Translations under genes and position numbers: made by a program
The notes under the pieces: generated by a model
Told to the model about the DNA's origin: nothing
Databases searched by the model: none
Seen by the model: only the letters and a program-made list of their open reading frames with translations
DNA from: Octopus bimaculoides
Taxonomy: Eukaryota
Assembly: GCF_001194135.2 (NCBI RefSeq)
Contig: NC_069004.1
Span: 1,893,639 to 1,957,638 of the forward strand
Direction: 5' to 3'
Length of the DNA stretch: 64,000 nucleotides
Shown here: in pieces, positions 3,884-64,000 of the stretch
Position numbering within the stretch: position 1 is the stretch's first letter
How the letters are laid out: every line of letters starts with the position of its first letter

Positions 3884-4020
3884 CCAAAGCTGCTGGATTC
3901 TTGTGTGTCTTAGGAATCGGTCTAGGAATCGGTTCACTTTTGATCTACCGCTTATTCAAGAAATACCAATGTTCAAATGACTTGCCAGATAAATCTGACG
4001 ATGAATGCTATGTACGTCTG
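3884..4020 (+). CDS. Internal coding exon encoding a Gly-rich transmembrane/signal-anchor segment; probable 5' exon of the OTULIN-family gene
   Basis: Strong acceptor (ttttcttttcttttttacag|) and donor (CTG|gtaagg). Only one of three frames is open: (x)KAAGFLCVLGIGLGIGSLLIYRLFKKYQCSNDLPDKSDDECYVRL. Phase 1 in, phase 0 out, matching the phase-0 acceptor at 39529. The link across the ~35.5 kb intron is inferred; the start-codon exon was not found. Confidence 0.65.
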
Positions 4021-9792: not shown

Positions 9793-12780
9793 AAACAATT
9801 TGGTTTAGACTTGCTTTAAATCATAACGAGTGATTAGTCATTTATTTCGTTTAATTTCCTCCAAACACACTGGTTAGCTTAGATTATTTGCATTGCTAAA
9901 TCTCAACAAAAGTGCTTAGTGTTATGAAAATTCCTGGTTAAATAGAGCATGGACTTATTATTTACTCAGTTTTTAATGCATTGATTGTAGATTATGAGTA
10001 AACAACTTTACTGTATTATTTATCGAGACTTGCTCTCTTTGAAGAAGCAGATCAAAGGAACAATTTCAAGTTGGCTGACCCCATCACGCATTACATTACT
10101 GTTGTGGGTCTTAGGACTCACAGGGTCAGTTACCTAGACCGAGATCACATTTCTGCCCCTGCCTCAACAGGACACCAGTCCATTGCAGCTTCACTCATTT
10201 ACAGATGAATGGACTGGAGCAATGAGAGAGAGGAAATATTTATTCAACTAAAACCCTTGCTTAAAATATTCACTGTCATGAATAGCCACCCAGATGATTA
10301 AAAATTTGGTATACGCAATTGAGGCAGTATTAAATTAAAGTAGCTATCTGTGTATCATACTCAATGCATGCAAACTGTCAATAGGCCAGCTACTGCAGTA
10401 TTTGTCTTGAGATAGCATCACTTATAGAAGTTCTGTGTTAAAAACACAATAAATATTAGAGGGAGAGACGACAGTTTACCTCAGCAGAGGTCTGCAAGAG
10501 CATTTCAGATTTATTTCAGCCTTTTTAATGCATTTCTCTGAGAATCTTGAGAGTGAATTTGGTAGATGGAAACTTAAAGAAGCCTGTCATGTGTATATTT
10601 AGACAGATAGATAGACAGACAGGTAGATAGACAGACAGACAGACAGGTAGATGTGTGTGTGTCTCCTTTGTCTCTCCTTTGTCTTGTATCTCTTTTGTCT
10701 TGACATCATACAAAGGATGTCATTCATTCCTAATACACTGCGAGAACAAATCTGACCATGGAGAAATATCACCTGGCTTGGAAATAGGTGAGGGTTGGCA
10801 ACAGGAAGAGCATTCAGTTGTAGAAAATTTGCCTCAATAAACTCCATCCAACCCAAGCAACCCTTTAAAAATGGACAATAGAATTACATGAAACTGTAAA
10901 ATGAATGCAGTGCCACAAAGATGGCTTGAAAGCATGTCATTAAATCCTCAATACAGGATTATGTTAGAGATATGAATCATTGTCTATGAAGAATCAAATT
11001 ATTGAAGTACTATTTCCTACACTTGTCTATGGAGGAAACAGTTTCCCTAGAAATCTCACATTTGGAATTTCTGATTCATAATTTTCAGTGATGCTCCAAT
11101 ATGTAGCCATCTTTCCTCACTCGATCACAATTCGTTCAAATTATAGCCGGGTCAGGGGTTTCCTCTTCTCATGTCTTTATGACATTACTCTTAAGAGTTC
11201 ATTCATGGTAGTGGTGGTGATGATGATGATCACAACAGCAGCATATATATTGATTGGAAGAGTCCATTTTAGAGGGAGGGAAATACCAATGGTTGATGAA
11301 TATAATGACTGGAAGAGCTGATTTTAACCAGACAGTTTTGCTGGATAGGGTAGCTGAGAGAGAGAGATAGAGAGACCCACCCCCTGCAACAATTTTATCT
11401 CCAGGGCTCATTATCATCTTCATCTTCATTTAACATCCACTCTCCATGCTGGCTTGGGGGTCAGATGGTTTGACTGGAGCTGATGAGCCAGAGCTGCACC
11501 AGGTCCCAGTCTGATTTGGCATGGTTTCTACAGCTGGATGCCCATAAAATATATTTTGGATGTTATTTATGTGTGTAATTGTAGTGGTGGTGCTGGTGGT
11601 GGGGGTAGTTGCTGCCACTGCTGCTGTTTCTAATTAGTTCACTTTAGCAACCCACTAGAACGACAGAGAGGAACTCATACAAAGCACAGGGGGAAACCCA
11701 CCAGTTCACACATGTGCCATCTATGTGAGGACCACACCTCACACATATCAGGTCTTTCTATGTTTGGTTGTGAGAATCAAGCAGTTGAAATATGTTACCC
11801 TCCTCCTTCCACTCCTTGCCAATCTGTTATTCTATATCCTGGTTGTTTTCATGTTTTAGTAGCTCAGCAACAGCAACAAAAGGGCTTAGCACCAACCCAT
11901 GTGATGTAAAATAAATGCGGTTTTCCCAGAATTTTCTCTCTTTTTTTTTTTTTAGGGTATTTATTCCCCATGCATATGCACAATGCTTGGATCTAGGAAT
12001 GCAATTGTTTTTTTTTGCTAGTGTTTGGAGAGAGGCTATGTGTGTGTGTGTAATAATTTTTTTGTTTGTCTGAGATAGATTTGGATAGACAGTAATGTTA
12101 TTTTCATATGTAGTGATAATATATATATATATATANNNNNNNNNNNNNNNNNNNNNNNNNNNNNNNNNNNNNNNNNNNNNNNNNNNNNNNNNNNNNNNNN
12201 NNNNNNNNNNNNNNNNNNNNNNNNNNNNNNNNNNNNNNNNNNNNNNNNNNNNNNNNNNNNTATACACATATATATACTTCCAAAGGGGGGTAGAGAGAGA
12301 GAGAGAGAGTTGTTTGTAAAAGTTTCGACCTGAAGTAAGAGTTATGTGAAGCTCTTACGTAAGTGTGTGTGTGACTGTATGTTTAGATGGTATACCTGTG
12401 TATAATGACTAAATGCATATATAGAATCGTGTGTGTGTGTGTGTACCTGTAAGGAAATGTGTTTCTCCAATGCTTCCCAACTACAAATTCTCTTACAATT
12501 AATATCTCCATCAAAGCCAATGTTGGATCCTCTATGCAATTTTCTTTTTTTTTTCTGTTTTTTTTTTTTTGCTAGATCTGCTCACATTAGCAACCAAATA
12601 CCCTTCAAACCAACCGCATCATCATCATTTAACATCTGTTTTTCCATGCTGGCATGGGTCATTTGATCTGGAAGGGGCTGGCCAGCCGGCGAGCTGCATC
12701 AGGCTCCAGTTGTTTTGGCATGGTTTTTACAGTTGGTTGTCTTAGCAACATTATAGACCCCCACCTCACCCGAGGTGACA

Positions 12781-20202: not shown

Positions 20203-21239
20203 TTTAAAATGCCAGCTGCCCTGACTCACTCAATCATGCCTTTCTAATAACTAGAACTTTTCATTAAATTTGTAGCAATATAAACGAGGTAGGGGTGGTG
20301 GTAAGCAGTTTCATTAACATTTTGATAGATTACTACAGAGGGGTAAGAGACCATTGTTATAGTCAAGAGAGAGAGAGAGAGAAGGGTTGAAGAGGGAAAT
20401 TATTAAAAGTGGGAGCGGATCATCTCCACCACCATAGATGTAATTAAAATATCATAACTTATCGCTGCTTGGTTGCTTCACAATCAACAAGTTCCAGTTT
20501 GAACATTAATGGAAAGAAATCAAGTTTTTGTTGGGGTTTTGTTTGTTTTATTTTTCTGAGCTTTTTTTTTTTTTGCTATAAAGGTAAAAAAGAGATTGTG
20601 AACAACTTCTTAATTGTCTAAAGTAGAATAATTGCTTTTTATTTATCAAGAAAAACCACTGTACAAAAGAAAACAGAAAATTTCTATCATCACCATCATC
20701 ATCATTTAGCATTCAGCTTCTAAGCTTGCCTGGGTTGGATGGCTTGATAGGGTCAGATCAATTGGAGGACTGCATCATGCACCAATGTCTAGAGCTGGAT
20801 GCTCTCCCTGTCATCAACCACATTACAACAGAGTGTACTGGGTGTATATTGTGGGATCAGCACTGATGCTGATAATCACCTCTTTACTTTGCAGGGAACA
20901 AGAGAGATTGATGGGATTAGTGAGGAGATTAAAGAATAGGAACAAAAAGAGTTTAACTTTGTGGCATTTAGATTATTCTATCGAATGGGAGAACCCTTCA
21001 GTCATGAATAACCATGGCATTGCAAATAGAAAGTTCCGCTCCAAGGCACAAGTCCGGGTAAGGTGGCAGTAAAGGTAACCTCTAAGAGGGAGTGGCCTGA
21101 GTGGAGAAGAGATGGAGGTCTTGGAAAGGAGACATAAGGGGACAGAGTGGTAAGAAAAAAAAATAGTAAAATTGTAATAAAAAAAAAGGATAATCAGAAA
21201 CCAGGCAATCAAGCTCCTTCCATTATACATTGTCCCAAA

Positions 21240-21455
21240 GGCAGCGAGCTGGCAGAAACATTAGTACACCGAGCGAAATGCTTAGCAGTATTTCGTTTGT
21301 CTTTACGTTCTGGGTTCAAATTCTGCCGAGGTCGGCTTTGCCTTTCATCCTTTTGGGGTTGATAAATCAAGTACCAGTCACGTACTGGGGATCAACCTAA
21401 TTGACTGGTCCCCTCCCCAAAAATTTCGGGCCTTGTGCCCAGAGTAGAAAAGAAT
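21240..21455 (+). mobile_element. SINE family A, short-tail variant (representative copy)
   Basis: ggcagcgagctggcagaa...gggttcaaattc...ggggttgataaa...ccttgtgcccagagtagaaaagaat. Other copies at about 4225-4440, 5525-5725, 18500-18685, 44626-44830, 46575-46685, 47449-47660 (+) and 54610-54830, 56540-56745 (-). Confidence 0.85.
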
Positions 21456-31974: not shown

Positions 31975-33055
31975 TTTGTTACATATAAGATCAGCAGAAA
32001 TAATCAGGGATCACAGAATAAGCAAGGAATGGCAACTATAAAACCTTCCTTCCCAACTTTCCAGTAAAAAAATAATTCTTAGGTACATTATCAATCGTCA
32101 CCTGAATGAATACTTAACCCAGAAATATGTTTTTGACCTTTATTCTACTCTTAAATATATCGTTCCTTCAATGGCCTCCACTTAACTGAACTTCCCTTGA
32201 TTGTTTCTATAGCCATCAAAAAATACACTCATTGTTCCTCCAACGTAATGCATGTACGTAAGAGCATGTACACGTGAGAGCATGTGAGTGCATGCACGCA
32301 CACGTGTGTGTGTGTGTGTGTGTGTGTGTTGTTCTTTTTTTAACTTTTCTACTTGTTTCAGTCATTGGACTGCAGCTATTTTGGAACACCACCTCATAGG
32401 GTTTGTTGAACAAATCGACCTTCGCTATAAGTCTGGTGCTTACTGTCAGTCTCATTTGCCAAACCACCAAGTTACAAGGATGTAAATAAACCAACACTGG
32501 CTGTTAAGTTGTGGCAGGGGGATGAACACAAAGACACACACACACATATGACATGATGAGCTTCTCACAGTTTCCGTTTGTCTTTGCTCGTCCTCAGTCT
32601 GGAGTAGCAATGGCCTGCTAGTTGGGGATGCCTGTCAAGCTCTCCTAAACATAATTCTAGTGAAACAAATTCACTGATTTCAAAAATAGAAAGAATACAT
32701 TTCTAAATCTCTCACAGAGATTTATGCAGTAGTGATGCCATAAAGTAGTTCTATGCTGTCAACTTAATGTGACAGTCCCATGAAGGGAATAATACTAATA
32801 ATCCTTTCTATTTTAAGCACAAGACCTGAAATTTTGGGGGTGGGGTTGAGTGATTACCTCAACCCTAGTGTTTTACTGGTACTTAATTTATCGATCCTGA
32901 AAGGATGAAAAGCAAAGTCAACCTCAGCAAAATTTGAACTCAGAGCGTAAAGACGGAAGAAATGGCACGAAGCATTTTGCCTGGTCTGCTGGAGGAGTGC
33001 ATTGAGATTCATCGATTTTATAGTGATGGTTCTTGTCAATTAGATAACGTATTAA

Positions 33056-33288
33056 GGCGGCGTGCTGGCAGAGTGGTTAGCACGCCGGGCGAAATTCTTA
33101 GCGGTATTTCGTCTGCTGCTACGTTCTGAGTTCAAATTCTGCAGAGGTCAACTTTGCCTTTCATCCTTTCGGGGTCGATTAAATAAGTACCAGTTAGGCA
33201 CTGGGGTCGATATAATCGACTTAATCCGTTTGTCTGTCCTTGTTTGTCCCCTCTGTGTTTAGCCCCTTGTGGGCAGTAAAGAAATAAG
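33056..33288 (+). mobile_element. tRNA-derived SINE family A, young full-length copy with long-tail variant
   Basis: A-box-like GGCGTGCTGGCAGAGTGG, B-box GAGTTCAAATTC, core tttgcctttcatcctttcggggtcga; direct repeat taacgtatt at 33045-33053 and 33290-33298. Confidence 0.85.
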
Positions 33289-39528: not shown

Positions 39529-40999
39529 GAATCTGTTGACAGTGTTTTTCACAAGGAAGAAATGGGTCATGGTTACTCAAGCCATGACTTACCAGCCGCT
39601 CACTATACCCCCGATACGGGAGTTAGCTTTCTCTTAGATTCTCGTAAAGAAATACCAAACCAAGAAGCTGTACATATATCAGAGACCCCAGTTAGGCACC
39701 GCAAGTTGGGACCAATTACTCCTTCAAAAGACTGCTGCAAACCTGAAAATTCTACTGTTGATTCCGACATGAAATTGCTTCTGACTGATGAAAGATGGTT
39801 AGAAGCTGCCAGTGGTGGTGGTGGGCATCAGTCACAGGACGATGACTGCAGCATTAGTTCATGTCCACAATCATTCACATCATCGTTGGTGGGTAATTAC
39901 AGCCCACGTTCACTGAGGGAACGGAATCTGGTGATCGAAAACGACACTGACCGATCAGAAAAGACCAGAAGTACAAATAATTCACCAAATAAAGAAAACC
40001 CATTACCAAAGAATCCTCACAATGACAAGGTTAACATTAGTAAAAACTTGAAAGAAAGCAGTGTTTTGTTGACTCCACCATCTGAAGAGGACTCCCCTTC
40101 CTCACCTTATCAACCTCTAATAAAAAAAACAAAATTGTTAGAAGCTGATTCTGACAAAGAGGATGATAGTTCCGGAAGTACAAAAAATTATTTGAACTAT
40201 AACATTAGAGAGTCTCCTGATGATGACAATGACAATAGCATCTTTAGTGAGTTATCATTCTCATCAAAGAGCTTGAGTCCTCCTTCCAGACGGGACTGGA
40301 GTTTAGATGACGAAGAAAAAGATTTGTTGTCGCCACTATGTCACTCATCCAGTTTTGACCAATTTCCACAACTCCTGCTGCGACGGTTACGTGAATGTAA
40401 AAGTGTCTCCCCAGAATCTAACAGATCGATAACATCAGAGGATTGTCTCAGTCCAGACAGTCAAATAGAAGGAATTGTCCTTGAGCGCTGTGACAGCATC
40501 GATTCATCTATATTTGAGATAATTAACGATGTACCACAACAAATTGAAAAAGATGAGGTTTTGCGATTCCACGGCATCGAGGACGAACTACAAGATTTAA
40601 ATGATGAAATGGATGACTTAATGTCTGGTCTTTCTAATTTAAAATCTAAATGTTCAGGAATTAATCCTGAAGCAACAGACTTACAGAGACAGATGCTTCT
40701 ATCTGAACAAGCATACAATGCTTTACAGAAAGCGCGGTCCCACTGTGCAAAGAGGCCTGGGAGTTTAACTCCGGATTCTTCAATAGGGGACTTGCAATCA
40801 CCAGCAGATAACTTTTTGTCTTGGGACATGACAGATTTCCAACTTGATGGTTTATCTTATGACAATGAATCCAACGTGATTGGTATCTTAAATGAGCAAA
40901 ATTATGTGCCTTTTTCTGTGGACTCAGACAATAACTTTGACTTGTCTACACTCCAACATCCATTCCACAGTGATAATCAATACTATTCAGTTACTGAAG
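39529..40999 (+). CDS. OTULIN: OTULIN-family gene, large exon (~490 aa acidic, Ser/Asp/Pro-rich, probably disordered N-terminal extension)
   Basis: 1471-nt open frame (ORF 39490..41007) bounded by acceptor tttctcttttcag|GAA and donor GAA G|gtgagt; phase-1 end joins GA at 47304 to make Gly and continues into the OTU domain. Confidence 0.85.
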
Positions 41000-41339
41000 G
41001 TGAGTGATGTCTAATGCTGTCCTACTTCTCTTCTCTGCTTTGCTCTCATTCGCCAGACATTACTTTTTTTTAAAATTGCTGTTGTTCATTTACTTAATGC
41101 CCTATCACAGAACAAAATGATCTCTCTTTATCTATTCAAGGATTATATGACCAAATACATAAACTGTACATATGATCAATTTCTCGTTTATCTTGGCATA
41201 TTATTTTTAAGTGAGAGATGAGATTCTTTTCCAGCTGAAGACAACAATATGGTAACAAATTAGTTCGATAACATAATTACCAGCATTATCTCTTCGTAGA
41301 GAATTCTAAAAAAAATTATTATAAATATAAATGTATTTA

Positions 41340-47017: not shown

Positions 47018-47303
47018 TTTGTTTTGTTTTGTTTTTATTTGTGGGGCAACAAGGCTACCATTGGTTCTGCAGTTTCAGCATCTTAACAGCAGGACCATTA
47101 GCTTCAGAATTCCATTGGTTTTAAAATTGGACTAACATAACAAAATAACCATCTGATTCTTATTCTTGTAACAACTGGAGTTCATTTTTAGGGCTTTGTA
47201 AGTTCTCAAATATTTAGAATTTAGTGTTTGCTTGCTTTTCTTTTTTCTTTTTTGATGGTGGTGGTCATGTTTTGTAAATCATTTATGGCTTCACATTTTA
47301 CAG

Positions 47304-47413
47304 GAACAGAAGATGATAAAAACATCATGAATGTAGGTCCTCGAAAAAATATACAAGAGTATGCTAAAAACCAATGGCGTGGGGAAACTCCAGAAGCTCA
47401 AAGATATCTCGAA
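47304..47413 (+). CDS. OTULIN: OTULIN-family exon, start of OTU domain
   Basis: ttttacag|GA ACA...CTC GAA|gtaagt; (G)TEDDKNIMNVGPRKNIQEYAKNQWRGETPEAQRYLE resembles the OTULIN/FAM105A stretch 'SV.pe.Di..Yc..EW(R/K)G.T' (recalled from memory, not searched). Confidence 0.9.
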
Positions 47414-48134
47414 GTAAGTATTTATGTTGTTGTTATTTTTATTTTGAAGGTGAACTGGCAGAACCGTTAGCACGCTGGACGAAATGCTTAGCGGTATTTT
47501 GCCCATCACTACATCCCAAGTTCAAGTTCAGCCGAAGTTGACTTTGCCTTTCATCCTTTCGGTGTCGATAAATTAAGTACCAGTGAAACATCGGGGTCAA
47601 TGTGATCGACTTAACCCCTCCCAACAAATTTCAGGTCTTGTGCCTAGAGTAGAAAGGGTTATTTTTATTTTGACATGGTGCTGGCATAGTCGTTACGGTT
47701 AAGAAGCTCTCTTTGCGACTACATAGTTTCAGGTTCAGTCCCACTGCACAGCACCTTGGGCAAGTGTCTTCTACTATAGCCCTGGGCCAACCAATGTGTT
47801 GTGAGTGAATTTGGTGAACAGAAACTGTGCAGAAGCTTAGCATACACATGCGTGCATATATCTTTGTGTTTGCTCCCACCCACAATTTGACACCTGTGCA
47901 GTACTGTTCAATTTAATGGTCTCAAGAGGCATTAAAAACATACATGCTGTCTGGAGATTTATAGAATTTATGAGAAGCAGAAGTGAAACATAAGCACAAT
48001 ATATCTAAGGCAGTCTATATCTAAATACATAAATCGGTCTATTAAGCAACAAGTTTTAACTTTTCATACTTTAATGAAGCTATCAAACTTGTATAACTTT
48101 TACTTCATAAACTTTCATTCTCTCCATATTTCAG

Positions 48135-48287
48135 GCTTATAATCAAGTACAACAGACTTTCGAATGCAACTACATACGAGTTATGCGTGGAGATAACTAC
48201 TGCGGAATTCGTTCCTGTATAGTTCAGGTGTTAATAAACGGAATTGCAATGAAACAGGAATTTGCCACAGCAGAAATTGTAAAGAAT
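48135..48287 (+). CDS. OTULIN: OTULIN-family exon carrying the catalytic Cys
   Basis: tttcag|GCT...AAT|gtaaga, 51 codons: AYNQVQQTFECNYIRVMRGDNYCGIRSCIVQVLINGIAMKQEFATAEIVKN. RGDNYC is the OTULIN Cys-loop; TGC at 48201-48203. Below the ORF-track cutoff. Confidence 0.93.
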
Positions 48288-49738: not shown

Positions 49739-49861
49739 CTTTTAAACCAATATTTGGAGGAACCAGAATGGGAACTAAAGCGGTGGTCTTTTGCCAGGCG
49801 TTTAAACTACACTGATGTGAAAGAAATGCTGTTCTCCTGTATTGATGAATTTTATTCACAG
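49739..49861 (+). CDS. OTULIN: OTULIN-family exon (OTU helical region)
   Basis: ttttctag|CTT...CAG|gtactt, 41 codons phase 0-0: LLNQYLEEPEWELKRWSFARRLNYTDVKEMLFSCIDEFYSQ; fills the expected gap between the Cys-loop and the SRDTS exon. Confidence 0.8.
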
Positions 49862-50620: not shown

Positions 50621-50887
50621 CATAACTTAGCTTTAGAGATGGACAAGACAGAGAGAGAAGACTGGGTGGAGGACCTCTTAAACAGAGAACCAATTGTTGA
50701 TATAAAAATAATGGAAGCTGCCAAATTGCTTATGATGCTTGATATAATTGACATTTATAAAAACCAACAAGCCGAAGATTATCCATTGTTCGTCCATTAT
50801 ATTTTTTCTCGGGATACATCTGACACTCCTGCAAAACTGTTGAAAAACATCCTGAATGCAGTCGGAGATTCTGGCAGTTTAGAACAG
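50621..50887 (+). CDS. OTULIN: OTULIN-family exon
   Basis: tttatttcag|CAT...CAG|gtatgc, 89 codons: HNLALEMDKTEREDW...EAAKLLM...YIFSRDTSDTPAKLLKNILNAVGDSGSLEQ; matches the family motif 'F(A/S)R(D/E)TS.dP..l..NhLN.VG..ggLEQ'. Confidence 0.93.
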
Positions 50888-51143: not shown

Positions 51144-51323
51144 ATTGATATGTGCCTCTTAGGACATGCACTCGGTGTAAAAATAACGGTGCCTCGTCTA
51201 TATCGATATGGTAGAGATGATTTTATACATGGATTTCCTGATTTACTGAACCAAAATTGGGACGAGGTGTATCTCATTACCGAAGACGATAGACATTACA
51301 ACATTATAATAAAAGATAACTGA
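51144..51323 (+). CDS. OTULIN: OTULIN-family terminal coding exon with catalytic His and Asn
   Basis: ttttcag|ATT...TGA: IDMCLLGHALGVKITVPRLYRYGRDDFIHGFPDLLNQNWDEVYLITEDDRHYNIIIKDN*. EDDRHYN is the OTULIN His-loop (His 51294-51296, Asn 51300-51302). Confidence 0.93.
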   Translation: MDMCLLGHALGVKITVPRLYRYGRDDFIHGFPDLLNQNWDEVYLITEDDRHYNIIIKDN

Positions 51324-52989
51324 GAAGAGACAATTCTATGATTACATTTCTAATTCTCTGTCGTTATCTCTCTTCTCTGCTGATGATGATTGAGAAGAGA
51401 AGCTAGCATCTTGTTCATCAGCTGGGAATCTACTGACACACTACATGTGGAGGCAACAGCTATTCGCATCAGTCAACTGTACAAGCTGCTCTACTATATG
51501 CTGCTAGCTGACCAGTGGATTAAAAACATTACTTTACCGGTTGATTTTTGGATGAAGATAACAAGACCAAGCTACACGTAGACACTATATCGTACGTCCA
51601 CCACCCAGAAATGGAACCCACCTTAAACAATATGGCTGTGAAACATTAGCTTTTATTTATTTATTTAATTTTCTTTGCAAATTTTTTTTTTTTTTTAATC
51701 TTTTCTGTTTAAAATCACAACTGTGAAGATGGAAGAATCGGTGGAATTGGTTTCAAGTTACATGCAATGCAAAGGAAAGGAGGCACCAAGCAAAGACCAT
51801 AGAAATACCTGTTCCCCATGTCTATATCTGTTAAAACTGTAGTGAACACTGTTGACATAAATGGTTCAGTATCTTATTAGAAACTTTTTTAGTTTCTGTT
51901 GCTGAAGTATCTTGGGGAAAAGGCCAATGTATAGATAATTGGTAGATCATTGGTATAATTGAATGCTCTTGTTGCCAGAGATTATAAAACTTTTTTCCTA
52001 TTTTCAAGGACCATTTAAATTATGTGGCTACAAGCTTATCACTATTCAGTTTGGGTTACTTGTGAGGAAATCTATTTTAAGGACAAGATGTATAAAAGTT
52101 AACGCAAAAAACATGAATACACCTGTGCATTTTAAATGTTTCATTTAAAACAGGATTGTTTCTACTGATCTAAGAAACACCTTCTAGATGTCAAATTTTG
52201 CTCGATATACATATAATTCTTTAGATGTCACTGTTAACCTTATTTATATTTTTGATAATTTTTCGTATATAGTTGACATCAATTTAGTCGTAATCAAGCA
52301 GAACCTTTAATGGCAGGGTCCTGTTTCATTGACAAATGAAGAGGATTGCACGTTAGCAAATTTTTTAAATGTAACGACTTTTGGTTAGATTCTACAGCAG
52401 TGACTTTACAATTAGTTTTGTAGTAAATCAGATCTTTTATTCTGCTNNNNNNNNNNCTAGTTTGCAATCCTATCCCATCCACCCCACAAAAACAGCAAAA
52501 TCTAGCCTCCAGACACTAGATAAAGCTGGATGCATTTAAATACAGCACGTGTGTTTGTGGCTGTGTGCGTGTGCATGTGTGTGCGTGTGTGTGACGCTAC
52601 TCAGTAGCACATGTTGCGCTGAATGTAAATATCCTCTTGCTTCCTCTTTTTATATATATACATATAAAACATTTTGTTTATTAACTGTCTCAACCACTGT
52701 GCCTCTCCTTGTTGAAATACATTTGGGACAAAGATGTGTTGAACTTGTTGGTTACTGTAGTGTAAGAACTATGGTCTGTCTAGAACATTCCTATGAACAT
52801 GACATCTACTATTCTGTGTGCGAGAATCAAAAGCACACCAGTTTAGTTTATTTATCTGAAAAGGGTTGTTGCTTCATTTATTCAAATATAAATAAAGTAC
52901 ATTTTTTAAAAAGTGTCTGAGTGCTTGACTTTTGCTTTGCCTATAGATTTACAAAGATGGATTATATCAACCAATTTATTTGTTCCAAC

Positions 52990-57361: not shown

Positions 57362-57594
57362 ACGTTCTTTACTGCCCACGGGGGGCTAAACACAGAGGGG
57401 ACAAACAAGGACAGACAAAGGGATTAAGTCGATTACATCAGCCCCATTGCATATAACTGGTACTTATTTAATCGACCCCGAAAGGATGAAAGGCAAAGTC
57501 GACCTCGGCGGAATTTGAACTCAGAACGTAACGGCAGACGAAATACTGCAAAGCATTTCGCCCGGCGTACTAACGATTCTGCCAGCTCGCCGCC
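57362..57594 (-). mobile_element. SINE family A, long-tail variant, near consensus
   Basis: Reverse complement closely matches 33056-33288 including the tail; CpGs retained. Confidence 0.85.
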
Positions 57595-58537
57595 CTAAAT
57601 GATATAAGTACCAGTGGTGCACTAGGGTCGATGTAATCGACAGTCTCCGCCATACCCCGCCCCCACCAATATTCCAAGCNNNNNNNNNNNNNNNNNNNNN
57701 NNNNNNNNNNNNNNNNNNNNNNNNNNNNNNNNNNNNNNNNNNNNNNNNNNNNNNNNNNNNNNNNNNNNNNNNNNNNNNNNNNNNNNNNNNNNNNNNNNNN
57801 NNNNNNNNNNNNNNNNNNNNNNNNNNNNNNNNNNNNNNNNNNNNNNNNNNNNNNNNNNNNNNNNNNNNNNNNNNNNNNNNNNNNNNNNNNNNNNNNNNNN
57901 NNNNNNNNNNNNNNNNNNNNNNNNNNNNNNNNNNNNNNNNNNNNNNNNNNNNNNNNNNNNNNNNNNNNNNNNNNNNNNNNNNNNNNNNNNNNNNNNNNNN
58001 NNNNNNNNNNNNNNNNNNNNNNNNNNNNNNNNNNNNNNNNNNNNNNNNNNNNNNNNNNNNNNNNNNNNNNNNNNNNNNNNNNNNNNNNNNNNNNNNNNNN
58101 NNNNNNNNNNNNNNNNNNNNNNNNNNNNNNNNNNNNNNNNNNNNNNNNNNNNNNNNNNNNNNNNNNNNNNNNNNNNNNNNNNNNNNNNNNNNNNNNNNNN
58201 NNNNNNNNNNNNNNNNNNNNNNNNNNNNNNNNNNNNNNNNNNNNNNNNNNNNNNNNNNNNNNNNNNNNNNNNNNNNNNNNNNNNNNNNNNNNNNNNNNNN
58301 NNNNNNNNNNNNNNNNNNNNNNNNNNNNNNNNNNNNNNNNNNNNNNNNNNNNNNNNNNNNNNNNNNNNNNNNNNNNNNNNNNNNNNNNNNNNNNNNNNNN
58401 NNNNNNNNNNNNNNNNNNNNNNNNNNNNNNNNNNNNNNNNNNNNNNNNNNNNNNNNNNNNNNNNNNNNNNNNNNNNNNNNNNNNNNNNNNNNNNNNNNNN
58501 NNNNNNNNNNNNNNNNNNNNNNNNNNNNNNNNNNNNN

Positions 58538-58569
<32 letters not shown>

Positions 58570-60559
58570 CCAGTGCACGAAACTGTAGGCCCTTGGGTCA
58601 CTCTAACTTCTGCCGATTATTAATAATATATAGAGATAGATATAGACGTGTGTGTATTATGTGTATATACGTATGTGCGTGTGTATATATATATATGTGT
58701 GTGTGTGTGTGTATTTATATTATATATATATATTTCTATGTATGTATATGTGTGTGTATGTGTGTATAATTATATATATATGTATGTGTGTGTGTGTGTG
58801 TGTACACTTAGACAAAATTTTGGCCGTTTGACATATTTTCGAATAAATGGTAGCTGCTGCATCATGTGAGCTTCTAGCTTTTAACTGTGGAATCTCTAAC
58901 GTAAAATTCGGCAACAAATCCTAGAAAGGATCTTTGATTGCTTTCAATTATTTCCCTCCTTGTTCGTATGAATGAGCGCAGCCAAAATCATTCTGCCATA
59001 CACCAGTTCTGCAGACCAATATTTCACACACCTACACTTTTAGCATCAAACGACCGCATCTTTTTCTAATTTTTTTCAGAGCAATTAAGAGCATGGAATT
59101 TATTGTTTAACACTAAATTCAACTTTGATCGAACATATTTATTATCATTTATTTCAGAGGTGACCAACAACTTTATTATTTTTTTCTTTATTAAGAGCTA
59201 CATGATATAATATAATGTAGCTTTTTTATTTTAGATGGTTTAGGGCAATTTTAGACTGTTATTTCTAGAGGGTTCGACCAACCACACAGAGGTACAGTCG
59301 TCGGCGGTTAAGGTTACAATAGAAAGTTGGGATTTATTCTGCGCACCAATCTCTTGAATCGCTTGAAGAAATTGGTGATCTTAAAGTATAAAACTCTATT
59401 TTCACTTTCACAAAAGAAGTTTTCACTCTTTTTATGAATCCCCATTAGTAATTTATCAACTTTTACATTGATCTGAAGCAGCTTAGCATAACCATGTAAG
59501 ATACAGGCGACTATGCTTAGAAACTGAGATTATTGGAGACGTCTTCTTGCTGCCCGAGGTTATAGGCCAACTGTACGAGAGTGACTAACACTAAAACGTT
59601 ACTGGTATTTCCTCCTACCTTTAGTGTTCTCGTTGTTTAGTACCATTAGTTGTGTTCTGTGATTATTTATTTCGTGGATCTGCTATTCCATAAAATAAAA
59701 ATACATTTGATTTGCTGCAAATTTCGCATATGTGTCTGGTGGTGAGCGAGCATTGTCCCCAAATTCTTCTTGTGTTATTATAATGAATGCTATCTCCATT
59801 TGTATAAAACTGCTGGTTCGTAAAACGATAGTTGTGTCTGTAGTTTAAAGTCTGAAACACGTCTGATTCATTTGCGTAGACGGGGCTGCACGGATGAGCG
59901 AAGTTAAAGGTATGTATCCTGCTAAATGTACGTTCCAACGGCGAACATCCCAACTCTTTAAATTCTTTCAACCTGTGACCAACGCGTCTTTTCAAAGCGT
60001 TTCAACTGTAATCCTCCCGTGGTTTTTTGAAGTGTTTCGACCATGACCAATGCGTCTTTTAAAAGCGTTTCAACCGTGATCGTCCCCTGTTCCAAATGTG
60101 ACCATCTTGTCTTTTGTTTATGTCCAAATCTTTTTTATGTCCCGCCCTACTCTCTGTGTGTCCTTCTCTCCTTTTAAGACACATTGGATAAGATAGTCTG
60201 AAATACCTGCCTGGAGAATGAAAGGTCGTATAATCATGGGAGGACAGCCTTTGAACATAGGTCGGAGACCATGGCGTTTATGCCTACTTTCACTTTTCAG
60301 CCAGCAGCTACTTTCATTATGGTGTGTGTGTGTGTGTTGTGTGTTGTTTTTCACTTGTTTCAATCATTGGACCTCGACCATGCTGGAGCACTGCCTTGAA
60401 GGGTTTTAATCAAACAAATCGATCCCACTACTTTTTGTTTGAAGTCTAATATTTAGTCTATCGGTTATGGGGACGTTCACAAACCAACACCAGTTGCCAA
60501 ACGATAGGAGAGACAAACACCACACACGCGCACACACATGTATATACGAAGCCTGTCGC

Positions 60560-60649: not shown

Positions 60650-63600
60650 ACACGTGTGTGTATGTAATACGTCTATGTGTGTGTGTGTGTGTGTATTTCT
60701 TATCTTTTACTTGCTTCAGTTATTGGACTGCAGCCATGGGGTGGGGGTCATCGCTTGGAGGGTTTTAGTAGAAGGAATCAACTTCAGAACATGCTGAACT
60801 TTTCCAGTCACATGGTTCTGGGTTCCATCCCACTGCGTGGCACCTTGGGCAAGTGTCTTCTACCATAGCCTCAGGCCAACCAAAGACTTGTGGGTGGATT
60901 TGGTAGACGAAAACTGAAAGAAGCCTGTCATATATATTTCCTTAAGCAAGACACTTCATTTCACATTGCTCCAGTCCACTCAGCTGGCAAAAATTGAGGC
61001 TGTATCCATAATTCAAAAGGTCCAGCCCTGTCACATTCTCTCCCTGAGAAATGCATTTAGGGTCGGATGTCTATGGAGTACTGAGCCACCTGCACTTTAA
61101 TTTGACGAGCAGACTGTTCCGTTGATTGGATCAACTGGAACATTCCTCAACGTAACTGATGAAGAGCCAGGCAGAATGGCAAAACTTGGAGCAAAGCAAA
61201 TAATACTATCAGTAATGTCATGTAAAAGAAATTCAAAAACTTTGAGGGAGAACATGACATATTTCTTTTTCAAAATGGTGAAGCGCAAACCAAATAAAGC
61301 TGTTGATGATGTGACTTCAGCAACAAACACATGTCTGTTTCATCTTTCCCAATGTGCTTTACTTGATTCTGTCCTTGGACTATGGCCATGCTGGGGCACT
61401 GCCTCAAAAGGTTCTAGTCAAAGAAATTCACCCCAGTACTTATTATTTTAAAGCTTGGTACTAATTCTGTCACTCTCTTTCGCTAAACCACTAAGTTGTG
61501 GGGACATAAATAAACCAACACCAGTTGTCAAGCAGTGGTGGGGAGCAAATGCAAGCACAAAGGCACCCACAGATATAGACATATATATGTGTGTGTGTGA
61601 TGGGATTCTTTCAGTTTCCATCTACCAACTCCACTCACAACGCCTTGATCGGCTTGAGGCTATAATAGCAGACATTTGCCCAAGGTGCCATGCAGTGAGA
61701 TTGAGCCTGGAACCATGTGGTTGACAAGCAAACTTCTTACCACATGGCCACACCTATTCCTCAAAATTAGATGCATTAGAGCTTTTCATCCATCAAATCC
61801 ACTCTCGAGGTTTTGGTCAGTCCAAGGCCAAAGTAGAGATTTGCCCTAAGTGTGTGCACGCGCATGTGTGTGTGTATGTGTGCGTGCATGCGTGCAAGTT
61901 TTTTTTTATACAAGGAAAAGGATATCAGTGATTTGTTCTTCACTATTCAGCTACACACACACACACAGAGTCTGAAACTTTAGCATAAAATCACCATTAA
62001 AAGCAATTAATTTATATCTAATTTTTTTTTTCAACTTTTAGGAGATACTGGAAGAAAAGATTTAGAAAAAGGTAAATATAGCTACAACCTGCACACACAC
62101 ACACACAAACACACACACACATCATTTACTTAATTATTTATTATTTGTTGTTCTTAAGCATTTTTGTTAACATTTTTCATTGTCTGTGTAACACTGCAAA
62201 TAATTTTTTGACAATGTTCAATTTAAAAAAATTTTTTTTTTGTGAACCAAAAAAGTCCCTGTACCCCATCTTCACCCCTAAACATTGTTATTAGATTATA
62301 GTGAGCAATACATGCTTTCAATAAAATAATTAATAATGATTAATTTTTGCCATTAGAATTGTTGTTTTTTTAATTATAGTATTTTCATTCAAACATAAAA
62401 TGCTTTCTTCGTAATAATAATAATAATAATCCTTTCTACTATAGGCACCAGGCCTGAAATTTTAGTGCAAATATAGCAGATTATGGCCAATACAATCAGA
62501 ATCTGAAAGCAAAATGAATAAATTACTCATTGTGACATTCTTAAAACATTGCAAGAGGCACAATTTTAAGAAAATACCATCTAAAACTGTTTTCTTAAAA
62601 ATCAGCCATTACTTTTACACTAACCTGATATGTGCAGTAAATTAAGAAGGTACTATATTCGATGACGTACGAGACACACTTTTTTTCCCAAAAATGGTCT
62701 CAGTTAATCACCATTTTGAATGTGAATTCCTTGCCTTGTGGTTGTATTGCCAGCTAGTTTTCATCACAATTTTGTTATTCCCGTTTGCTTTTTCTCCCAA
62801 GATGACTAGTAAGGGAATAATGTAGTGAAGCCTAAATTTGAAACCACGAAGGTTTAGTATCTAGGATCGAACTACATCAGATTGGGCGACTGCCCTGAAT
62901 ACTAAACAATCACTTTGCAGCAATATTATTGGAAGTTCCAGATGTGACCACATAAATGGGGTCCATGAAAGCAAGAGCATGCCAGAATCAGTGCAGTGGT
63001 TAGAGAAGGTCCCAGAGAAGATCGATGACGACAAGATTCTTGGTCCCTGCTCGACTTGTGTTTAAATGAATCTCTTCACCTACAATGCACTTCTCCAAGC
63101 ATGTACCATGAACACCATATCATTACCTCTTACCACATATAAATAAGCAGCTTGCCAGTTCTTAATCAGAGGTGCACATAGGTGAAACAGACAGGTCCAT
63201 AAGAAACTGGTTCCCTGGTTGCTGCTCAACCCTGAGTTAAAGGAATCATTGACTGCGAAGAACAGTATTTCCCCACCTCTCACATGAAGCCATTCTTATC
63301 TGTCATTAATAAACTTCATTTACTGCTGGCAGGCCACAACACAGTCCTGATAGGCATCCGTGTAATTAATGTAAATATTGCGATAAGCACATATATAAAT
63401 AAATGTTTATCAAATACAGTTCAGAGTTTGTTTTAATGTGGGACAGCACGTAGGTTAAACCGCATATCAATTAATCAAGTCCTGTCTAGAAAGTCTCACA
63501 ATGGTAAGCCACAACATTCATAGCCAAGTCCAACATGTCTTTTAACCATCCATATAGGACTTCATACCTAAAGATAAGAAATGCTTACATGCATCTGTGG

Positions 63601-63840
63601 TATGCATATTGTTAATATGAAATACTTTCTGTTCAATGTCAAGTGTACACAACTGATGTTGTTTTAAATCAAAAAAGCTACCTATGTATCATACATGGTA
63701 GTTGGCACCCTCTTGTAATAATTGAAATTCATCTTCAGGATTTTATAAATTCTCAAATATTAGGAACTGATGCTTTCTTCTTTTGCTTTTGTTTCTTTTC
63801 TTTTTTTTTTTTAATTATTTGTTTTAATAATATTTTACAG

Positions 63841-63950
63841 GGAGAGATGATGAGAAAAATGTTATAAATGTAGGCCCCCAACAAAATATACAAGAATATG
63901 GTAAAACTCGATGGCCTAGAGACAACCCAGTATCTCAGAAATATCGAGAG
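63841..63950 (+). CDS. Second OTULIN-like tandem paralogue, first OTU-domain exon; gene continues beyond the window
   Basis: attttacag|GG AGA...GAG|gtaaat; same length (110 nt) and phase (1 in, 0 out) as 47304-47413. (G)RDDEKNVINVGPQQNIQEYGKTRWPRDNPVSQKYRE; 18/36 aa and about 80/110 nt identical by manual count. Confidence 0.85.
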
Positions 63951-64000
63951 GTAAATATTTATATCAGTATTGCTCGTTTGTTTGCTTTTTCACTTGTTAG

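Follow-up and report, generated by a model that had tools for sequence, protein, structure and literature searches.

Probable partial tandem duplication of OTULIN in octopods, with a rewritten proximal-ubiquitin loop in the short copy

Human OTULIN (FAM105B; family C101 in MEROPS and Pfam) cleaves Met1-linked diubiquitin exclusively, by substrate-assisted catalysis that involves Glu16 of ubiquitin, and it is a partner of LUBAC, the complex that assembles linear ubiquitin chains, with a PUB-interacting motif (PIM, D-M-Y-R) centred near Tyr56. To our knowledge, it is the sole deubiquitinase described as strictly Met1-specific, a property dependent on the S1′ site, which orients the proximal ubiquitin. 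The human genes of OTULIN and its paralogue OTULINL (FAM105A) adjoin on 5p15. The subject of this report is a pair of OTULIN-family genes in the octopus Octopus bimaculoides, detected in a stretch of 64,000 nucleotides (nt) of its genome (contig NC_069004.1, positions 1,893,639 to 1,957,638 of the forward strand), referred to below as the window. The short paralogue, to which the exon at 63841-63950 belongs, is termed c2, and the long upstream copy, with the exon at 47304-47413, is termed c1; the five exons encoding the OTU domain are numbered E2 to E6, E2 being the 110-nt exon just located and the third coding exon of the RefSeq model of c2. All exons given in window coordinates lie on the + strand.

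In human OTULIN, helices α1 and α2 form the S1′ (proximal-ubiquitin) site; the substitutions W96A and TQK100-102AAA lower both activity and affinity for Met1-diubiquitin, and Tyr91 coordinates the catalytic Asn341, the Y91F enzyme having a 20-fold lower kcat and an unchanged KM (PMC3690481). OTULINL is an inactive paralogue with a membrane-localisation motif and a triad of Asp139, His350 and His352, and OTULIN genes have been acknowledged in 'a few non-chordates' (PMC7862380). When OTULIN was combined with octopus, cephalopod, mollusc or oyster in a literature search, the top-ranked papers made no mention of OTULIN.

The octopod pair is probably an old and conserved partial tandem duplication, in which the loop of one copy was rewritten early and then kept, rather than a copy in decay or in rapid evolution. 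c2 would have originated from the duplication of the five OTU exons of a long ancestor, c1 (about 945 amino acids (aa)), which has a predicted membrane-spanning helix, before Octopus and Argonauta separated, and c2 (291-301 aa) would later have gained 5′ exons of its own. Soon after duplication, some eight replacement changes would have entered E2, centred on the α1-α2 loop (W-R-G-E-T to W-P-R-D-N); E2 would then have stayed almost unchanged, with E3-E6 and the 3′-untranslated region (3′-UTR) repeatedly homogenised by conversion and E2 left outside. Long membrane-bound and short soluble roles, which oysters would fill from one gene, would be divided between c1 and c2. RefSeq already contains the gene as such, and the kind of gene-family evolution is a known one; the new elements are its paralogy, the mosaic of conversion and the unique loop.

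The short gene and its paired exon

The exon at 63841-63950 is a coding exon of a complete, RefSeq-annotated OTULIN-family cysteine deubiquitinase gene. The window is 100% identical to its counterpart on chromosome CM046624.1 of assembly GCA_001194135.2, here locus L003 (L003 coordinate = window coordinate - 50217), onto which the 301-aa protein XP_052832307.1 (P0007, "ubiquitin thioesterase otulin-like") maps exactly as seven exons with GT-AG introns. The third of these (L003 13624-13733) is 63841-63950 and encodes two-thirds of Gly25 and Arg26-Glu61, including Tyr44, Trp49 and the loop P50-R51-D52-N53. Extension of the scaffold, proposed in a first-pass annotation of the window for finding the remaining exons and further copies, recovered four more OTU exons, all intact and 0.7-4.2 kilobases (kb) past the window end (exons 4 to 7 at L003 14441-14593, 15496-15618, 16187-16453 and 17768-17947), and the catalytic Cys84, which was also to be checked, is present in the motif RGDNYCGIR.

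Against the Pfam profile PF16218 (Peptidase_C101; cut-off 27 bits), P0007 scores 208 bits over residues 35-298 and profile positions 3-265 of 265, E2 supplying residues 25-61. Chains from human OTULIN crystal structures match c2 at E ~1e-40, without gaps over E2, and FAM105A matches at 1.5e-33; identity to human OTULIN is 32-33% over the whole OTU domain. The AlphaFold model of c2 (predicted local distance difference test (pLDDT) 89.8; predicted template modelling score (pTM) 0.87) has the fold of the human enzyme, with a template modelling score (TM) of ~0.9 to 3znv and 4ksj. A Foldseek search placed FAM105A (6drm) on top, marginally above OTULIN; these two proteins account for every one of the 18 best PDB matches, which have E values of 1e-21 to 4e-18 and a target TM of 0.82-0.92, and otubains come next at E ~1e-8. 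The equivalents of the human triad Cys129/His339/Asn341 and of Tyr91, Trp96 and Asp336 are all found in c2, where Cys84, His293, Asn295, Asp290 (human Asp336), Tyr44 and Trp49 occupy columns conserved at >=90%. In c2, the catalytic residues are encoded past the window end; all four species have the triad motifs RGDNYC84GIR and EDDRH293YN295 in this copy, and c1 has them too.

The exons at 63841-63950 and 47304-47413 are each 110 nt long and share a phase, two bases completing a split codon before 36 full codons. Both have AG/GT borders, the upstream flank ending in attttacag and the downstream flanks reading gtaaatatttat and gtaagtatttat, i.e. gtaa(a/g)tatttat; the peptides of the pair are TEDDKNIMNVGPRKNIQEYAKNQWRGETPEAQRYLE and RDDEKNVINVGPQQNIQEYGKTRWPRDNPVSQKYRE. 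A recount gave 80 of 110 identical nucleotides (72.7%) and 18 of 36 identical residues (50%), with 18 replacement codons and six that differ synonymously only, which is exactly what the first-pass annotation had counted, and its description of equal length, phase and similar splice flanks holds. Translation likewise agrees that Y-x4-W is retained in both copies and that NQWRGET has become TRWPRDN in c2. DNA homology extends ~130 nt into the upstream intron (63711-63962 against 47164-47425; 70% over 263 nt, E ~5e-27), and because it does so the similarity of the two E2 exons is not attributable to chance. The E2 region is the sole collinear non-repeat similarity between the two halves of the window, the other matches being interspersed repeats. 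The earlier proposal of a tandem OTULIN paralogue generated by duplication at the DNA level is supported.

The rewritten loop at the S1′ site

E2 encodes helix α1, the α1-α2 loop and the start of α2, and the divergence, as had been proposed, is located at a surface whose function has been tested by mutation. In the c2 model, these elements correspond to a helix at residues 41-48, a loop at 49-53 (W-P-R-D-N) and the start of a helix at 54-69, with a block-mean pLDDT of ~97. The first-pass annotation had assigned both Tyr91 and Trp96 of human OTULIN to the S1′ surface; this stands for Trp96, a mutated S1′ residue together with TQK100-102, and not for Tyr91, whose part is to coordinate Asn341.

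Loop conservation was counted across 111 other family members covering the E2 region. The tyrosine and tryptophan themselves are nearly universal (c2 Tyr44 in 107/110 sequences, c2 Trp49 in 108/111), and W-[KR]-G-x-T is found in ~95% of the 111; W-P-R-D-N is found in c2 only. Directly after the tryptophan, where 98/111 relatives have Lys or Arg and c1 has Arg, c2 has a Pro that none of them has; at the second position (Gly in 105/111 and in c1) it has an Arg that is equally without precedent (0/111); at the fourth (Thr in 106/111 and in c1) it has Asn, shared by 2/111; and at the sixth, where 82/111 have Lys or Arg, c2 has Val and c1 has Glu. The motif W-[KR]-G-x-T-x-[KR] (human R97-K102), used here as a conserved functional motif and not as a formal family-defining criterion, is thus absent from c2 (W-P-R-D-N-P-V) and present in c1 (W-R-G-E-T-P-E) except for the final Lys or Arg. 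The corresponding loop in human OTULIN is R-G-N-T-Q-K, as against P-R-D-N-P-V in c2.

Changed binding of the proximal ubiquitin by c2 is plausible on these comparisons, and its S1′ site may bind this moiety in a manner unlike that of c1 and human OTULIN. c2 is most likely an active soluble deubiquitinase with altered handling of the proximal ubiquitin, a reading favoured because the catalytic residues are under strong constraint and the new loop is itself conserved. A stronger proposal appears doubtful, namely that c2 is a natural OTULIN variant whose loop, once rebuilt, became fixed across octopods, and that instead of canonical Met1-diubiquitin it may recognise some other linkage or a ubiquitin-like modifier, or may process Met1 chains at greatly altered rates; if it were true, c1 would keep the ancestral activity and the pair would be an independent invertebrate counterpart of the OTULIN/OTULINL split in which both members are catalytically competent. 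The occurrence of c2 beside c1 offers a natural loop swap for probing the share of the loop in the Met1 specificity of OTULIN.

At its ends, c2 differs from human OTULIN: its N-terminus shows no clear PIM (D-M-Y-R) for binding HOIP, and its C-terminus is without the PDZ-binding ETSL. The first exon of c2 (10001-10043 in both the Octopus vulgaris locus L001 and the Argonauta hians locus L002) encodes an acidic-aromatic stretch, SEFEDLC in Octopus and LEYEDSY in Argonauta. By eye, this stretch faintly recalls the vertebrate PIM (EDLYR/DMYR), and Octopus is without a Tyr at the aligned place.

Age of the split, gene conversion and selection

A protein search with the upstream copy retrieved oyster proteins and two octopod proteins named 'ubiquitin thioesterase otulin-like', P0001 from O. 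vulgaris and P0002 from Argonauta hians, and the P0001 cluster also contains isoforms X1-X3 of O. sinensis and P0007 of O. bimaculoides. The c2 proteins of O. vulgaris, O. sinensis and Argonauta hians carry TRWPRDNPVSQKYRE. Within E2, c2 of O. bimaculoides and O. vulgaris differ at 1/36 residues; between Octopus and Argonauta, 30/36 residues are identical and 17/22 synonymous sites differ, i.e. are saturated. Because Argonauta shares the c2-type exon including TRWPRDNPVSQKYRE, the split between c1 and c2 appears to be older than the Octopus-Argonauta divergence, and a recent divergence of c2 E2 is ruled out by the same derived loop in Argonauta. Quartet sites, with the cephalopod transcript P0018 (locus L005; Logan SRR8281665) as outgroup, agree: in E2, 10 nt and seven aa sites unite c1 with the outgroup and the c2 genes of Octopus and Argonauta with each other, against 5 and 2 that unite c1 with Octopus c2. 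Because these sites pair both c2 genes, the difference between the two E2 exons would predate the separation of the two genera.

In E3-E5, the quartet sites point the opposite way, with 21 uniting c1 and Octopus c2 against 3. Third-position identity between c1 and c2 of O. bimaculoides is 0.60 across E2, rises to 0.90-0.97 from the end of E3 through E4 to the middle of E5, with 0.97 reached in E4 and the earlier half of E5, and stands at 0.63-0.70 in the second half of E5 and 0.77-0.87 in E6; between Octopus and Argonauta c2 it is 0.40-0.67 throughout. A tract running from the end of E6 into the first ~247 nt of the 3′-UTR (51251-51570, + strand; L003 17875-18194 in c2) has 33 sites at which c1 equals c2 and differs from O. 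vulgaris c2, and four that follow orthology. The same comparison gives 1 against 38 in the 190 nt after the tract and 1 against 29 in E2, and the first 100 nt past the stop codon are identical between c1 and c2. E3-E6 and the 3′-UTR have thus evolved in concert, homogenised by gene conversion, partly after O. bimaculoides and O. vulgaris separated, with E2 outside the tracts. At the protein level, c1 and c2 are 50% identical in E2 against 82-100% in the remaining OTU exons, and E2 looks so much more diverged because the conversion tracts miss it; the contrast is largely a conversion mosaic and not divergence aimed at E2 alone. Such a mosaic makes one exon seem anomalously diverged, which calls for caution where accelerated evolution is claimed at the level of single exons.

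Nei-Gojobori estimates for c1 against c2 gave dS 0.334, dN 0.084 and dN/dS (ω) 0.25 over the whole OTU region, and dS 0.885, dN 0.243 and dN/dS 0.27 for E2 alone. Between the c2 genes of O. bimaculoides and O. vulgaris, dS is 0.138, dN 0.011 and dN/dS 0.077; between those of Octopus and Argonauta, dN is 0.083 and, with dS saturated, dN/dS ~0.03. Polarised by parsimony, the changes in E2 number eight replacement and two silent on the c2 stem and 2/1 on the c1 branch. By these estimates, selection on c2 is purifying, and the pattern in E2 is one of an early burst at roughly ω = 1 followed by long stasis, a burst too small, old and saturation-affected for relaxation and positive selection to be told apart. 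Over E3-E6, a relative-rate count found 16 residues unique to c1 and 6 unique to c2 (p = 0.05), and the c1-type E2 of P0017, an Octopus long-form model, differs from O. bimaculoides c1 at 7/36 residues, including W-C-G for W-R-G. These counts hint that, if one copy is less constrained today, it is c1 and not c2.

Long and short architectures and competing explanations

c1 combines the OTU exons with a long N-terminal part. A 137-nt exon at 3884-4020 (AKAAGFLCVLGIGLGIGSLLIYRLF), with splice borders, encodes a hydrophobic helix with 53% identity to the N-terminus of the oyster protein P0009 (E 2e-5), which on its hydrophobicity is predicted to be a membrane anchor. A 1472-nt exon at 39529-41000, again with splice borders, holds an open reading frame (ORF) of 505 aa for a low-complexity linker, with 29% identity to the oyster long form (264 residues) and 94% to P0017. 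E2 at 47304-47413 retains the ancestral Y-x4-W-R-G-E-T and is followed by E3 (153 nt, 48135-48287, as long as c2 E3, with AG/GT borders and the catalytic Cys in RGDNYCGIR), E4 (123 nt, 49739-49861, its protein 100% identical to that of c2 E4), E5 (267 nt, 50621-50887) and the last exon, E6 (180 nt with the stop, 51144-51323), in which EDDRHYN provides the active-site Asp, His and Asn; the OTU exon lengths (110/153/123/267/180 nt) are the same in both genes. The called product has 945 residues and ends at L003 1106, i.e. window 51323. Most of the window is occupied by c1, including an intron of 35 kb, and its first ~120 residues are encoded upstream of the window.

Most of the best matches in an exhaustive search for family members were 600-1250 aa long with a C-terminal OTU domain, and both of the c1 exons at 3884-4020 and 39529-41000 align to the long proteins of oysters (831-875 aa), in which this domain comes last. 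Because the oyster long form and the best family matches share this layout, c1 is taken to have the ancestral architecture; it represents the usual invertebrate form, and c2 is a partial copy that comprises the OTU exons and has acquired new 5′ exons. No c1-type 5′ exons homologous to the first exons of c2 were found in the window.

In sequence and fold, the known systems nearest to c2 are human OTULIN and OTULINL; oysters offer another close comparison (Crassostrea gigas LOC105343394 and C. virginica LOC111107600). Their long form of 831-875 aa is built as c1, a hydrophobic helix at the N-terminus being followed by a long linker of low complexity and, at the C-terminus, by the OTU domain, and they also have a short, OTU-only product of 292 aa, as c2. 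The short P0003 and P0010 (292 aa) and the long P0009 (875 aa) belong to the same 90%-identity cluster and therefore look like isoforms from one gene. The oyster forms share one set of OTU exons, with W-R-G-Q-T, whereas octopods have two sets, the short one with W-P-R-D-N. Because oysters also have an OTU-only product in the long-form cluster, a division of roles may be proposed in which octopods split the long membrane-bound and short soluble forms between c1 and c2, and the locus would then exemplify how partial duplication may distribute such isoforms between genes. OTULINL resembles this arrangement in being a second family member formed by duplication, one partner being membrane-associated and the other soluble (as a prediction on the octopod side), and its structure 6drm is the best structural match of c2; it differs in that both octopod copies keep the Cys/His/Asn triad and that in octopods it is the membrane-helix copy, c1, that carries the ancestral S1′ motif.

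Four other explanations can be set against the early, conserved partial duplication. Within the window alone, just E2 and the micro-exon of c2 come into view, as would be seen if E2 were a pseudo-exon, a dead piece of a duplicate whose other parts had no function, but this reading is refuted to the point of having next to no probability by the four intact exons past the window end, the exact mapping of P0007, intact orthologues in four species and a c2 ω of 0.03-0.08. The first-pass annotation had favoured a lineage-specific OTULIN cluster now under relaxed or positive selection, possibly with a different ubiquitin-linkage specificity in c2. We consider this unlikely, although a near-invariant K/R-G-x-T after Trp49 has given way to P-R-D-N, with residues that occur in 0-2/111 relatives, the region is the experimentally defined S1′ site (PMC3690481) and the c2 stem has its eight replacement to two silent changes, roughly ω = 1. 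Ongoing relaxation or positive selection is not borne out by the dN/dS values, which are 0.25 for the paralogues and, with c2 under strong purifying selection at present, 0.03-0.08 for the orthologues of c2. Octopus and Argonauta have an identical loop, conversion elsewhere explains much of the contrast of E2, and with so low a count as 8:2, and one so affected by saturation, relaxation cannot be separated from positive selection. Nor do the genes form a cluster: there are two copies only, and a third tandem copy is ruled out for the interval from c1 to HAUS2.

The two remaining explanations are both improbable. If c2 were an alternative 3′ exon cassette, with the c1 5′ exons spliced to either OTU block, long products ending in c2 exons would be accounted for, namely a 948-residue O. 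vulgaris product (L001 1-21782), with its start upstream of the locus and its end at the stop codon of c2, and the 897-aa P0017, which joins the c1 N-terminus and c1-type E2 and E4 to c2-type E5-E6. However, c2 has its own first exon (MATS.E.ED), common to Octopus and Argonauta, and a second, alternative first exon; RefSeq separates the genes in O. bimaculoides, where the 945-aa product ends at the c1 stop; and P0017 skips the catalytic-Cys exon, near-identical exons being an invitation to mis-joins. The chimeric long-form models are likely to be annotation artefacts of this kind, read-through transcripts being the less likely reading. That c2 might instead be a pseudo-enzyme or a ubiquitin-binding-deficient scaffold, like vertebrate OTULINL/FAM105A, is suggested by the rewritten S1′ loop, by the best Foldseek match (FAM105A 6drm, marginally above OTULIN) and by the vertebrate OTULIN paralogue, which demonstrates that activity can be lost (PMC7862380). 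It is opposed by the presence in c2 of Cys, His, Asn, Tyr44 (human Tyr91) and Asp290, where FAM105A has the triad Asp139/His350/His352 (PMC7862380), and by the conservation of the c2 catalytic residues over a divergence at which silent sites are saturated.

Several observations also weigh against the early, conserved partial duplication itself. The chimeric models may mean that c1 and c2 are not fully independent transcription units. c1 is without Lys at the position of human K102 (T-P-E), so that even the 'ancestral' copy departs from strict conservation of the S1′ site. E2 third-position identity is higher between the paralogues (0.60) than between Octopus and Argonauta c2 (0.43), an order opposite to the naive expectation for an older split, over 30 codons only. 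The long copy of Argonauta was not recovered, there being no OTU exons within 10 kb upstream of its c2; the 10-kb flanks with which L001 and L002 were fetched end a few hundred bases before the expected end of c1. Orthologues of c1 were sought in O. vulgaris, O. sinensis and Argonauta: with the c1 OTU domain as query, a word-indexed search of proteins gave c2-type octopod and oyster proteins only, and with the large c1 exon as query, only the cephalopod transcript P0018 and the exon-only ORF P0167 were obtained, the locus of the latter (L004) being free of OTU exons within 10 kb. In Argonauta, a 392-nt stretch from the 3′ flank of c2 is repeated at 96% (L002 958-1346 against 20551-20942), ~9 kb upstream of the c2 start codon and at the start of the fetched locus, and the repeat also aligns to the 3′ flank of Octopus c1. 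This duplicate indicates a probable second OTULIN copy, locally homogenised, whose end would lie just beyond the sequence fetched.

At its 5′ end, c2 is variable. The RefSeq model begins with a coding exon at 60218-60260 (L003 10001-10043; MKGRIIMGGQPLNI...), an alternative to the MATS... first exon of other species and homologous to the start of O. sinensis isoform X2 (MKGRKITGGQPLNRG). It is followed by a 30-nt micro-exon at 62042-62071 (L003 11825-11854), which encodes DTGRKDLEK and the first base of Gly25; its peptide is identical in O. vulgaris and O. sinensis, although O. sinensis isoform X3 skips the micro-exon and the Argonauta model lacks it. In O. vulgaris, the conserved first exon lies at L001 10001-10043, and L001 10497-10596 aligns to window 58538-58637, directly after an assembly gap of 858 N at 57680-58537. 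By this synteny, the gap should hold the conserved first exon of c2, MATSSEFEDLCTTPR, and may be the reason why the RefSeq model starts at the MKGR... exon. HAUS2 lies downstream of c2 in O. bimaculoides, O. vulgaris and A. hians, at each of the three loci fetched.

In the 3′-UTR, blocks of 17-25 nt (e.g. CTTAAACAATATGGCTGTGAAAC) are conserved among Octopus c1 and c2 and Argonauta c2 despite saturated synonymous sites (window 51397-51650 and L002 19532-19820), and they may be microRNA- or protein-binding sites. A structured RNA in the conserved 3′-UTR was rejected (fold z-score -0.41, no Rfam match, no tRNA). The window contains eleven N-gaps, amounting to 3124 bases, and its introns are full of long (TA/CA)n-type microsatellites and of an abundant family of short interspersed repeats of ~200-230 nt with 73-90% identity between copies, such as those at 21240-21455, 33052-33283, 47449-47669 and 57365-57598.

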